Under the pieces are notes generated by a model. The model searched no databases, was not told where the DNA came from, and worked only from the letters and a program-made list of their open reading frames with translations. This document shows positions 23,794 through 28,412 of a DNA stretch of 64,000 bases, piece after piece. The position numbers and the translations under genes were made by a program. The DNA comes from Cyanophora paradoxa CCMP329 (lineage: Eukaryota > Plantae > Glaucophyta), in NCBI GenBank assembly GCA_004431415.1, contig QPMI01000126.1, positions 5,442 through 69,441 on the forward strand, given 5' to 3'. Each line of letters starts with the position of its first letter. Within the stretch, counting starts at the first letter, position 1.

Positions 23794-26700
23794 TCAAAGG
23801 TTGTAGAGGCGGACGGCGGCGCCGTCGAGGGAGGGGAGGAGGACGGCGGCGCGGTGGGCGGGGGCGGTGAGGTGCTCGAAGCGGTACGGGGCGCCCCGCC
23901 CGAAGTCGAGCTCCAGCAGCGGCAGCTCCGCGAACGACTCCACCAGCAGGGCGTTCTCCGGGGGCGCCCCCCGGCAGAGCCCGCTCGGCGCCGCCACCCC
24001 CTTGGGCGCCGAGAGGCCGCCCATGGCGGCGGCCGGCGAGAGGGTGCCGCTCATGCCGCCGATGGGGGGCTCGGGGGCGACGAGGGAGAACTTGCGGCGG
24101 GAGCCGGAGAGGACGACGCGGGGCGCGGCGCGGGCGCGGATCTCCTCGGCGACGGCGACGTAGGCGCTGGCGGCGGCGGGGTCCACGCGGCGGGCCGCCT
24201 CGGCGAGGAGGCCGGCGACGTGGGCGAGGGAGAGGCCGCGGAGGGCGTCGGGCGCGAGGGCCGCCGAGACCCAGGCGCTGGCGTTGCCGAAGAAGTCGGG
24301 CCCGACGCCGTCGAGGCGCTCCCGCAGGTCCACCCCCCGCACCAGCCACGTCTCCTCCGGCGCCGTCGCCTCCTCCAGCCCCTCCGCCCCTCCTCGCCCC
24401 AGAGGCCCGCCCCCAGCCCACGAGGCCGCCCCGCCACCGACGCCGGCGGCCGCACCGCCGCCCCCGCGCTCGCGCCGCGCTGCCCCGCGTGGCTCAGGGC
24501 CGAGGCGCTGCGGGCAGGGCGGGGGCGCCCTGCGAGGCGCGCCGCTGGGCGCGGGCGGCGGGCGAGGCGGGCGAGCCCGGGGCGGGGCTGGGGAGGACCC
24601 AGCCCCCCGCGTACGCCGCGACGGGGCTCCCCGGCACGAAGATGCCCCGTACGTCCCCGCCGCCCCGGGCTCCCCGGGGGGGGCCCAGGCCCAGCGGGCG
24701 GGGCGGGGCGGCCAGGGAGAGGGGCCCGGGGAGGGCGCGCGAGGCCGGCCGCACGGGGGTCCCGGGAGGGAGCCCGGGGAGCGGGGGGCGGAGGCGAAGC
24801 TGCCGGCGCGGGGGAGGGCGGGGCGGGAGGAGGGGCGGCGGGAGGGCGGGGGCAGGCCGACGAGGAGGGAGGCGCGGGTGGCGGCCTCGTCGCCGCCGGG
24901 GGGGCCGGCGGTGGCGATCACGACGGAGCCGCGCGGGGCGATGGCGTCGCGCAGGACCCCCACGCAGGTCTTCCAGGTGTACGCGGCGAGGACGTCGGCG
25001 GGGGAGAGGCCGCGCGCGAGGGCGTCGGCGTCGCGCATCATGGCCTCGAGGTCGCGGCGGGTGAAGTCGAGGCGGGTGGAGCGGCGGGGCGGGGCCTCGG
25101 AGGCGGTGTAGGGCGGCGGCAGGCCCTCGAGCACGTGCACCAGCGGCTGGCCCCACGCGCTCCACTCCCCGCTCCGCCCCGCCCACGAGAGCGCCGACGT
25201 CGGCCGCGACCGCCCCGACGCCGGCCGCCCCCGCGCCGACCCCGGCGGCACCAGGCCCCGTGCGAGGCGCCCGTCCCCGCCGTCCCCCGCCGAGCTCGGC
25301 CGCTGGTGCGCGCCACCGGCGGAGGAGGGCCGGTGGGGGCCTCCGGAGCCGGGGCGGCTGCCGGCGGGGTGGGCGGAGCGGGGCCGGGCGCGGGGGGAGG
25401 CGTCGGCGGGGCCGAGCCTGTCGGCGGAGGAGTAGATGGCGAGGGAGGAGGCGGTGCCGAGGGCGGAGTGCGGGCGCGGGGGCCCATGGCCGTCGTGCGT
25501 GGGGGACTCGCGGTGCGGCGCCTCGTAGTCGTGGGCGGCGTTGAGGTAGGTGAGGACGGCGTCGAAGGGGGAGGCGGGGCGGGAGTGCGGCCCGGGGCTC
25601 GAGCCGTACGCGGAGAGGGCGCCGAAGGTGGAGAAGGGGCCCGGCCCGTGCGTGGTGCTCGCGCTCGAGGGCGGCCGCTCCGGCTGCACGCCAGCCCCCG
25701 CCGCGAGCCCCACCGCGGCGCTCTCCAGCGCCCGCACGGCGGCGGGGCCGTGGAGCGAGATGGTGCTCGGGGCGGGGTTCGAGGCGACGCGGACGGTGGC
25801 GGAGGAGGCGGTGGTGGCGAAGGCGGCGGGGACGGACCCCGCGCTCGCGCTCGTCTCGAACGCCGTCGGGATCGAGTCCGCCGTCGCCGTCGCCGTCAGC
25901 CCCGCCATGCCCAGCGGCGAGCCCAGCCGCTCCGGCGGCGCCGGCAGCGCCTGCAGCACCGGCGAGGAGAGCGGGAGGGGGCCCGCGCCGGGGGCGGCAG
26001 GGGCGCGGGCGGAGGGGGCGGGGCGGGCGGTGGGGGCGGGGGGCTCGACGGCGCGGGCGGCGATGGCGCAGCCGCGGGCGATGTCGGCCTCGGCGCGCGT
26101 GCGGCGGGCCTCGCGCTCGTCGTCCCCCAGCTCGCCGGCGTCGGGCTCCGCCGCGTAGCTCGGCGCCACGTTGTGGCGGGGCAGGTAGGGCGGGGGGAAG
26201 GGGAGTCGGCGGGCGGCGCGGGCCCAGGCGACGAGGAACTGGCAGAGGGCGGGCGGGTCGCAGACGACGCGGGCGACGGAGACGGCGAGGATGGAGCACG
26301 TGTGGCGCCCCGCCCGCGGCGAGTCCTCCCCCGGCGCGCTCCGCAGCGTCGAGAGGCGGACGCGCATGAGGGGCTTGTGGAAGACGTCCGAGGGGACGAA
26401 GGGGCGGCGGGGCTCGTCGGGCGCGGGGCCGGCGGGGGGCGTCGGGGAGGAGACAGGGTCGAGGAAGGGGAGGAGGGCGTCGCGGCCGCAGGAGGCGTCG
26501 GGGAGGGCGTCGACGTAGACAGTGCGGAAGTGGATGGAGGAGGAGGTGAAGACGAGGGCGCCGTCGAGGGTGCGGCGGCCGAGGGCCGAGGAGACGGGGC
26601 GGAAGGCGTGGGCGGCGACCTCGAGGGCGGCCTTGACGGTCTCCCCCTCGAGCGGCATGGGGTAGAAGAGGGCGAGGTCGATGGAGGAGCCGTCCGCCTG

Positions 26701-28412
26701 CAGGTAGTCCAGCGCGGAGAGGACCTTCCACGCGTCCCCGTGCGACTCCCCGGACTCCACCTTCCGCACCTCGATCCGCTGCGCCGCCCGCGCCCGGATC
26801 TTCGCCATCTTGCGCTTCAGGTTCGCCTGCCCCCGCCCCCGCCCTCAGCCGCCCCGCGGCGCGAGGGTGGGGGCGGGGCGGGGCGGGGCGGGGCGGGGGC
26901 GGACGAGGAGGACGGCGCGGTCGACGACCTTGAGGGCGGCCTTGATCTCCTCCTCGGTGACGGTGAGGACGCCCGTCGGGGCGCTCGCCACCTCCAGGCG
27001 CCCGTGGTTCGTCACCCAGTCGTGCACCTTGATCTCCGGGATCGTCAGCCGCTTGTCGGGGTCCTTCTCCAGGAGCCCGAGGAGCAGGCTCTTCAGCGCC
27101 GGGTCCACCTCCCGCGGCAGCACCAGCCTGCACCGCGCGAGTCAGGCTCCGCCCCGCCCCCGCAGCCGCCGCCGGGCCGGGGCCCGGGAAAAGGCGCACG
27201 GGTCGTTCTGGATCTTCTCGTAGATGCCCATGATGGTGGGGGCGAGGTACGGGACCTGCCGCGCCGCTCGGGAAGAGGCGCAAAAGGCGCGGCGCGGGCG
27301 GCGCGGGGCGCGCCTGGCCGAAGACGAAGTAGTAGAGGGTGACCCCCGCCGCCCAGATGTCCACCGGCTTCCCGTGGTACGCGTCCCCTGCCCGGGCCTC
27401 AGCGAGGCGGGGCGGGGCGGGGCGGCGCGGGGCGGGGCGGGCCGGTGAGGGACTCCGGGGAGAGGAAGGCGGGGGTGCCGGCGGTCTTGGAGACGGTGTC
27501 GTCGTCGCCGGCGATCATGTACGCCACGCCGAAGTCCCCGATCTTGATCGACCCGTCGTCCCCCTTCAGGATGTTCTCCGGCTTGATGTCCCGGTGCAGG
27601 ATCTTGTGGTGGTGCACTGCCCCGCCCGCCTCGGCCCCCGCGGGGCCGGGGCGGGGCGGGGCGGGGCGGGGCGCACGGTACTCGAGGCCGTTGATGAGCT
27701 CGCGGAAGACGCGGCGGGCCTCCTCCATCGTCAGCAGCTCGTTGTCCTCGCGGTGCACCGCCACCGGCCCCCCGGGCATCAGCTCCATCACTGCCCGCCC
27801 GTCAGCGCGCCGGCCTGGGGGGCGCGGCGGCGCGGGGCGCGGCGGGCGGACCGAGGTAGAGCTTGTCCTCCTCGGGGTCGTCGATCACCTCGTAGAGCCG
27901 CACGACGTTCGGGTGGTTCAGCTTCTTCATGATCGCAATCTCGTGCAGCACGTTCTGCAGCGCGTTCCCGGACCTTCCCACACGCTTCCTCTTCAGAATA
28001 GATTTCTTCATAATCTTGACCGCCTGCGCGCCCGCAGCGGGTGACGCGATCCCAGTTTAGCGGGGCGCCCCGAGGCGCCGGCAACAGGCGGGGCAGCGCA
28101 CGTAGGTCTTGTTGGTGTTCGTATCGATGCATATCTTGACCTTGCCATAGGATCCGGCGCCTGCGCGACGGCGGAGGCGGCCCAGCTAAGCATCGTGGCT
28201 CTAGCTGGGTGGCACCGGGGAGCCCAGGCTCGAATAGGCTCTCTTCTGGACGCACCGAGCTTCTCCCTGATGATGTACTGATTGATGCGGCGTGATCCGG
28301 ACTCGTCCTTCTCTCGCACGAGCTTGTGGGTCTCAACCACGCTCTCGGACCCTGTCCCGCTGTCCTCGCCGCCGGTATCGGCGCTCACGCTGAAGACCGG
28401 AAGGCCCGGCAT
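23794..28412 (-). CDS. CaMKK/GRIK(SnAK)-family Ser/Thr kinase fused to a C-terminal BAHD-type acyltransferase-like domain
   Basis: Kinase motifs: [96 protein letters not shown] phase-0 intron (26827-26904) joins in frame to a 1004-aa ORF containing [31 protein letters not shown] and LDFGRG. Confidence 0.8.

Follow-up and report, generated by a model that had tools for sequence, protein, structure and literature searches.

Kinases of the CaMKK/GRIK type stand directly above AMPK/SnRK1 in eukaryotic energy signaling, and the route by which metabolic state reaches them is only partly understood. In CaMKKs, the autoinhibitory/calmodulin-binding segment directly follows the kinase domain. Here, we describe a nuclear gene of the glaucophyte Cyanophora paradoxa CCMP329 in which the exons for a CaMKK-type kinase are joined in frame to a long exon for a BAHD-like acyltransferase fold. 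The gene is located on the minus strand of a 64,000-nt stretch (the window; assembly GCA_004431415.1, contig QPMI01000126.1, positions 5,442 to 69,441), whose numbering is used throughout; features are on the minus strand unless marked otherwise. A kinome preprint found the CaMKK2 clade to be near-universal in eukaryotes, placed it beside LKB1, listed a sparse sister clade (OG040) as present in Cyanophora, and named CaMKK orthologues as the sole upstream kinases of AMPK orthologues in yeast and Arabidopsis (10.1101/2020.01.27.920793). Algae are reported, in another preprint, to have one to five BAHD copies (10.1101/2020.11.18.385815). In land plants, CER2-LIKE proteins aid very-long-chain fatty-acid elongation without the catalytic His of the HxxxD motif: CER2-LIKE1 and CER2-LIKE4 lack this residue, CER2 does not require it, and OsCER2 interacts with the condensing enzyme WSL4 (PMC5489795). 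The His-independence of the CER2-LIKEs thus provides a precedent for a non-catalytic BAHD module.

The Cyanophora gene comprises nine exons. Exons E1 to E8 (26905–28412) encode the kinase part and were assigned by identity to the public gene model P0001 (EukProt tig00000489_g1372.t1, 1330 amino acids), by RNA joints and lengths, and by the Pkinase match; they are located at 28412–28256 (E1), 28160–28102 (E2), 28023–27852 (E3), 27790–27677 (E4), 27616–27443 (E5), 27387–27314 (E6), 27255–27200 (E7), and 27127–26905 (E8). E9, a long exon of approximately 3 kb (26826–23794, from the sequence and RNA joints), ends with the stop codon at 23796–23794. P0001 has the same kinase plus BAHD architecture, and it was the only match to the long open frame in a collection of 5.8 billion sequences. 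The exons rebuilt from the window, together with a predicted 69-nt intron at 24598–24530, translate exactly to P0001. A first-pass annotation made by a model from the letters alone had proposed a phase-0 intron at 26827–26904 that splices the kinase in frame to the BAHD part; its coordinates and phase agree with the rebuilt exons and with P0001.

RNA and DNA support was read from assembled run contigs, namely X1 and X3 from two studies, X8, and X12, the latter from a DNA run. X1 and X3 were classed as RNA runs, since each provides one contig from which introns are missing. In these contigs (1837 nt and 1603 nt, respectively), introns 1, 2, 3, 6, and 7 are explicitly absent, with joints of CT..AC ends listed at 28159/28255, 28022/28101, 27790/27852, 27254/27313, and 27126/27199. 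Upstream, X1 reaches 28594 and X3 reaches 28583, giving a 5′ untranslated region of at least 28413–28594. Both contigs contain exactly 533 nt from 26826 to 27683, which is the exon sum (223 + 56 + 74 + 174 + 6), whereas retention of intron 8 would give 611 nt; therefore, introns 4, 5, and 8 are removed too. For these three introns, removal was deduced by length arithmetic, as their joints are unlisted since (CCCCG)n repeats were masked. The downstream RNA contig piece stops precisely at the acceptor at 26826, and that of the DNA run X12 continues into intron 8, to 26840. Further RNA contigs cover 26118–26438, 25375–25997, 25113–25397, 24837–25142, and 23785–24384; thus, E9 is transcribed as far as its stop codon. 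The kinase and the BAHD fold come from one gene and one spliced mRNA, as had been anticipated, the RNA contigs of both studies having the lengths for removal of all eight introns.

Introns 1 to 7 have lengths of 95, 78, 61, 60, 55, 58, and 72 nt (sequence and RNA). Among the eight confirmed introns, the GT-AG type accounts for six and the GC-AG type for two (introns 5 and 6, 27442–27388 and 27313–27256). Intron 8 (78 nt, GT-AG, phase 0, with a (CCCCG)n tract) was assigned from the sequence and the RNA length arithmetic. It runs GTCCGCCC...CTGAGGGCGGGGGCGGGGGCAG; its 5′ motif is identical to that of intron 3, and its 3′ end shows a branch region of the CTGA type and then CAG, as in introns 3 and 5. 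Its splicing puts E9 straight after ...VVDRAVLL, giving the junction peptide AVLLANLK, and its retention would add 19 codons before a TGA at 26847–26845, the in-frame stop that the first-pass annotation had pointed out. This stop past the kinase exon, together with an ATG at 26808, six codons into E9, would suit a scheme with two products, in which a kinase ending in retained intron 8 and a BAHD-like protein starting at this ATG are made from bicistronic or overlapping transcripts; a minor unspliced isoform is compatible with the contigs. We regard such a scheme as extremely improbable, given that intron 8 is removed in the RNA contigs of two studies, that its splice motifs are those of the neighboring introns, and that an upstream open reading frame (ORF) of approximately 340 codons would be expected to keep ribosomes from reaching the second ATG by leaky scanning. 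Moreover, only 97 nt lie between the end of E8 and the first ATG of E9, which bears out the earlier remark that a separate promoter would not fit between the kinase and BAHD parts.

The Pkinase profile matched P0001 residues 47 to 307 with an E-value of 1.4e-67. Highest scores among solved structures were obtained with CaMKK2 (E 7e-81, 275 bits) and CaMKK1 (E 9e-75, 255 bits); the next family was LKB1 (183 bits), with LKB1 and AMPK approximately 90 bits below CaMKK2. All catalytic motifs are intact in P0001 (VAIK-type Lys in β3, HRD, DFG, and LSPES). The kinase is of the CaMKK type, as previously assigned, and apparently active; it belongs either to the CaMKK2 clade or to the sister clade OG040 known from Cyanophora. 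With CaMKK1/2, plant GRIK/SnAK, and yeast Sak1/Tos3/Elm1, the protein shares a kinase domain most similar to CaMKK2/CaMKK1 and the catalytic motifs, whereas its C-terminal extension of approximately 990 residues with a BAHD fold sets it apart from these kinases. A basic helix, predicted to span 23 residues, lies right behind the kinase domain, where CaMKKs have their regulatory segment (26755–26826; AlphaFold helix at residues 2 to 24 with a predicted local distance difference test score (pLDDT) of approximately 87, then 69). A comparison of the junction helix with PDB sequences, in which a CaMKK/calmodulin peptide was sought, gave no significant match. By its position, the helix would correspond to the CaMKK autoinhibitory/calmodulin-binding segment, an equivalence drawn by analogy.

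Behind this helix, as established through remote sequence similarity and modeling, E9 encodes a complete two-domain BAHD/Transferase (PF02458) part with a chloramphenicol-acetyltransferase-like fold that is split by two inserts. The N-terminal domain (26161–26736, P0001 residues 374 to 565) contains the motifs LSALD and SVARVVCD and was assigned by hhalign, by a pLDDT of mostly 74 to 98, and by an ESM score of 0.92. It is followed by insert 1 (25096–26160, approximately 355 amino acids), which lies at the inter-domain crossover; it is predicted to be disordered (pLDDT <50), has a third-position G+C of 0.94 to 1.00, and is covered by RNA contigs at 25113–25997. The C-terminal domain starts with a strand and a helix (24934–25095; alignment A2, pLDDT 88 to 95), is interrupted by insert 2 (24361–24933), also predicted to be disordered and harboring both the intron predicted in P0001 and a stretch of doubtful frame discussed below, and continues at 23797–24360 with VDLRERL..FFGNA, DFGRGAP, and LLPSLDG (phmmer, hhalign, pLDDT 85 to 95 outside one loop). 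The inserts had been described as Ser/Pro-rich; this was incorrect, as insert 1 is Ala/Pro/Ser/Gly-rich and insert 2 Gly/Pro/Ala/Arg-rich.

In direct profile searches, PF02458 scored 16.3 bits with the whole ORF and 19.5 bits with the C half, below the Pfam cut-off of 22.7 bits, and a Pfam scan of the whole ORF and five pieces left the N half and the inserts without any match. A phmmer search against PDB gave agmatine coumaroyltransferase at an E-value of 0.027, with three colinear stretches at HxxxD, VDxR..GN, and DFGxG. The assignment is therefore carried by intermediate relatives and structure, and the BAHD fold claimed by the first-pass annotation was upheld by this route but not by a direct hidden Markov model match (19.5 versus 22.7 bits). 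With the C half as query, an exhaustive phmmer search of 1.84 billion representative sequences identified 20 proteins with E ≤ 1e-3 (best 6.6e-9), and all ten relatives scanned were PF02458 members above the cut-off (E 1e-10 to 3e-30). Alignment by hhalign to a profile of 15 bacterial PF02458 relatives yielded probabilities of 96.7% with the N half (E 3.6e-10) and of 99.0% with the C half (E 5e-18). In agreement, ESM-Atlas features pointed to PF02458 clusters for the N half (0.92, 23 of 30 matches) and the C half (0.96, 25 of 30).

AlphaFold2 run on alignment A2 gave pLDDT values of 85 to 98 for most conserved blocks and <50 for the inserts; because this alignment consists of PF02458 relatives, the model and the homology call do not count as separate lines of evidence. 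All top Foldseek matches were BAHD enzymes (E 2.6e-8, TM-score by target 0.67 to 0.69), and superposition with Coleus HCT by VIA-align gave a Z-score of 32.9 and an rmsd of 3.2 Å over 373 aligned residues. The same two-domain fold was found in plant and fungal BAHDs in general (HCT, agmatine coumaroyltransferase, TRI101, and vinorine synthase; Z 28 to 33, rmsd 3.0 to 3.7 Å, 334 to 379 residues), whose HxxxD, VDxR..GN, and DFGxG regions are colinear with those of the Cyanophora domain. The latter differs from them by its marginal sequence similarity (the phmmer E-value of 0.027), the replacement of His by Arg, two long inserts, and the kinase fusion. CER2/GL2-like proteins, which act on KCS partners, including CER2/GL2-KCS6 complexes, and EPS1, both BAHD folds that work without the catalytic His, were among the structural matches as well; unlike the Cyanophora protein, they are free of a kinase fusion and belong to land-plant BAHD clades rather than to a bacterial-type subfamily.

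The nearest sequence relatives of the C half are short bacterial PF02458 proteins of 365 to 432 amino acids, which stand alone in bacterial gene neighborhoods and share 34 to 42% identity in the matched stretches; one of them (P0031) derives from a Bacteriovoracaceae metagenome-assembled genome. Thus, the earlier BAHD label is appropriate for the fold, but the closest relatives are these bacterial proteins and not plant BAHDs. They share the motif set LSPxD, S-H-xxx-D-G, LSxND, VDYRR..YFGNA, LVTNLSRLP..DFGxGxP, and ILP..DG. They differ from the Cyanophora domain in being stand-alone and without inserts; among the aligned members, only P0020 has lost the His, and none has lost the two Asn residues considered below. 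Given that the closest relatives detected are bacterial, a bacterial-type gene was probably the source of the fusion, which would have occurred within the glaucophyte lineage.

In alignment A2, the family motif S-H-xxx-D-G appears as A-R-VVC-D-P, with an Arg codon (CGC, 26269–26271) at the near-invariant catalytic His. This codon is the same in X1, X3, X8, and X12, whose contigs cover 26220–26377 without a differing letter, so the Arg read by the first-pass annotation is genuine and its reservation that accurate reads might show His is refuted. Further deviations in alignment A2 affect LSxND, which reads LSPAD with Ala in place of an Asn invariant among the aligned relatives, and the TNLS of LVTNLSR, which reads ESFA with Ser in place of a second such Asn; Glu takes the place of the second Arg of VDYRR, which most relatives keep. 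No change was seen in the HxxxD Asp, in the Asp and Arg of VDxR, or in FGN, DFGxGxP, and LP..DG. DFGRG was correctly located at 23907–23893 but represents no deviation within the nearest subfamily, in which the fourth position varies; P0021 has DFGRG, too. The retention of structural motifs along with the loss of several catalytic-site invariants is the usual signature of a pseudoenzyme. The proposed catalytic alteration was thus confirmed for the His and extends to the two Asn residues, implying a generally disabled site, and nothing was found that would favor retained CoA binding.

An Arg at the HxxxD His is also present in the stand-alone bacterial relative P0020 (SLSRAVGDEY), and His-less members may thus exist inside the bacterial subfamily. 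This resemblance is relevant to a reading in which the BAHD-fold domain would still be an enzyme with changed chemistry, e.g., a lyase, a thioesterase, or another His-independent catalyst, that couples a metabolic step to the kinase. A parallel is given by EPS1, a lyase of the BAHD family that carries Ser instead of the catalytic His and no acyl-CoA binding motif (PMC11605079), which ranked among the best structural matches (Z 31.9), and the fold and tunnel-forming motifs are kept in Cyanophora. On the other hand, Arg is a poor general base, the His is not the only loss, as two more residues that never vary in the aligned relatives are gone, and, unlike for EPS1, no clade is known to conserve these changes. 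Altered catalysis, suggested by analogy, is in our opinion quite unlikely.

We lean toward the interpretation that this single mRNA yields a kinase-BAHD fusion in which the fold serves as a non-catalytic, regulatory or targeting module. From the sequence, acyl transfer by the BAHD-like domain would be lost, and the domain would act immediately behind the basic helix. If a small ligand bound in what was once the substrate tunnel, or if a partner protein bound to the domain, the most plausible target would be the helix, and kinase activity would be set in this way; alternatively, the domain might bring the kinase to its substrates. A complex prediction that paired the kinase plus helix with the three folded BAHD blocks, each given as its own chain, gave a score of 0.00, which is evidence neither way. 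The first-pass annotation proposed a sensor that links CoA-thioester status to energy signaling, an idea that would be compatible with the data and is speculative. A more specific version, in which the disabled fold still binds acyl-CoA or a related metabolite and switches the CaMKK-type kinase via the autoinhibitory-type helix, which would make an upstream kinase of AMPK/SnRK1 a metabolite receptor, is a long shot. Retained CoA binding is uncertain because several pocket invariants are lost.

Several findings weigh against a functional module. At 26676, one base is missing in the RNA contigs X1 (depth 29.4 of 29.4) and X3 (15.3 of 15.3), whereas the deletion is absent from X8 (0 of 11.8) and from the DNA run X12 (0 of 30.2), which both agree with the window. 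The deletion lies 50 codons into E9, and the frame then runs to a stop at E9 codon 310, giving a product with the kinase, the helix, approximately 50 residues of the BAHD domain, and approximately 260 out-of-frame residues. Apparently, the culture line bearing the deletion lives without the BAHD domain. Likewise, no orthologue and no second fusion were found in searches of limited sensitivity, and the structural support shares the PF02458 alignment on which the homology call was based. Word searches for homologues with the 1010-amino-acid ORF, with the N half as part of the full protein, and with the C half as part of a 431-amino-acid piece returned only P0001 or nothing among the best 8000 candidates, and were likely swamped by low-complexity words, so that these blanks carry little weight.

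These observations bear on the possibility that the BAHD-like tail is a lineage-specific neutral or decaying appendage, i.e., the remnant of a captured bacterial-type gene that is transcribed and translated only since it is in frame. The loss of catalytic and invariant residues, the two very long low-complexity inserts, the frameshifting deletion in RNA contigs of two studies, and the failure of the limited-sensitivity searches to turn up an orthologue are all in line with it. However, no fold-determining motif has been lost, model confidence is high across all conserved blocks, the reading frame is uninterrupted in the reference strain, X8, and X12, and the third-position G+C amounts to 0.94 to 1.00 over most of the 3 kb, even if mutation bias alone could maintain the latter. 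We consider a neutral tail unlikely. On either side of 26676, one and the same frame has a third-position G+C of 1.00, so the window shows the evolved frame. The difference at this position could reflect strain, allele, or laboratory mutation. If one culture line carries a recent frameshift, growth in culture does not depend on the domain; otherwise, the gene exists as a further allele or copy. The BAHD domain may thus be missing entirely from at least one culture line.

The anatomy of this lineage-specific domain fusion is real and well supported; its mechanism is speculative. A literature search on Cyanophora BAHD/CaMKK proteins and on BAHD-kinase fusions identified no description of this architecture. 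Hence, the statement that the architecture is undescribed holds for the papers found, while the gene model P0001 was already public. The precomputed annotation of P0001 names kinase families only, illustrating how Pfam-based annotation can miss an entire BAHD-type domain. The fusion would suggest where to seek a link of acyl-CoA or another metabolite to the AMPK/SnRK1 pathway and would add a kinase-tethered case to the few known non-catalytic BAHD proteins. Its value is limited by its being known from one species only and by the possible loss of the BAHD domain in one culture line.

The coding frame was evaluated by base composition. The G+C content is 0.59 to 0.85 per 500-base window between 20000 and 32000, and two rival frames are open over the gene, one of 1186 amino acids in antisense (23782–27342, plus strand) and one of 956 amino acids in another sense frame (24494–27364, minus strand). 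ORF length is worthless as coding evidence here because these rivals are open as well; both overlapping ORFs are by-products of 80% G+C. In the proposed frame, the third-position G+C is 0.94 to 1.00 from 27250 to approximately 24850, including all of insert 1, and again from 24400 to 23800, and the frame is free of third-position A/T down to 24761. Within E9, this signal sits in the frame of the kinase, apart from 24760–24391, where it quits the proposed frame: runs free of third-position A/T shift to the second frame (24766–24510), then to the third (24515–24424), and then return. Three shifts of the same sign are the pattern that would be expected from three dropped bases, or from three introns of length 3n+2. 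None of the listed RNA or DNA contig pieces spans 24409–24836, and the splice-site candidates tried for the frame of 24760–24391 gave no consistent solution. Approximately 120 codons of insert 2 (24760–24391) are therefore doubtful, in the first-pass ORF and in P0001 alike; the folded blocks are unaffected. A separate candidate intron at 24861–24800 was rejected, as its 5′ end is read through by RNA contigs. Minor differences were observed at three G/C runs (25255, 25274, and 25283), each with one extra base in the RNA contigs X1 and X3 (net +3, approximately 10 codons re-read), and at 24386, with an extra base in one low-depth DNA contig.

The (CCCCG)n pentanucleotide tracts, which break short-read contigs, number 47 in the window versus 0 expected. 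Three of them are located in the gene, at 26872–26896, 27406–27440, and 27645–27674, on the sense strand and just inside the 5′ ends of introns 8, 5, and 4, respectively. Approximately 40 more sites occur elsewhere (e.g., 14320–14344, 15680–15729, 37384–37423, and 43524–43558), and the tracts may be a general intron feature of the genome. On the convergent side, an open frame of 245 amino acids on the plus strand (22834–23571) heads for the 3′ end of the kinase gene; its N-terminal half is hydrophobic and resembles a membrane protein, and the frame is probably the last exon of the convergent neighbor.

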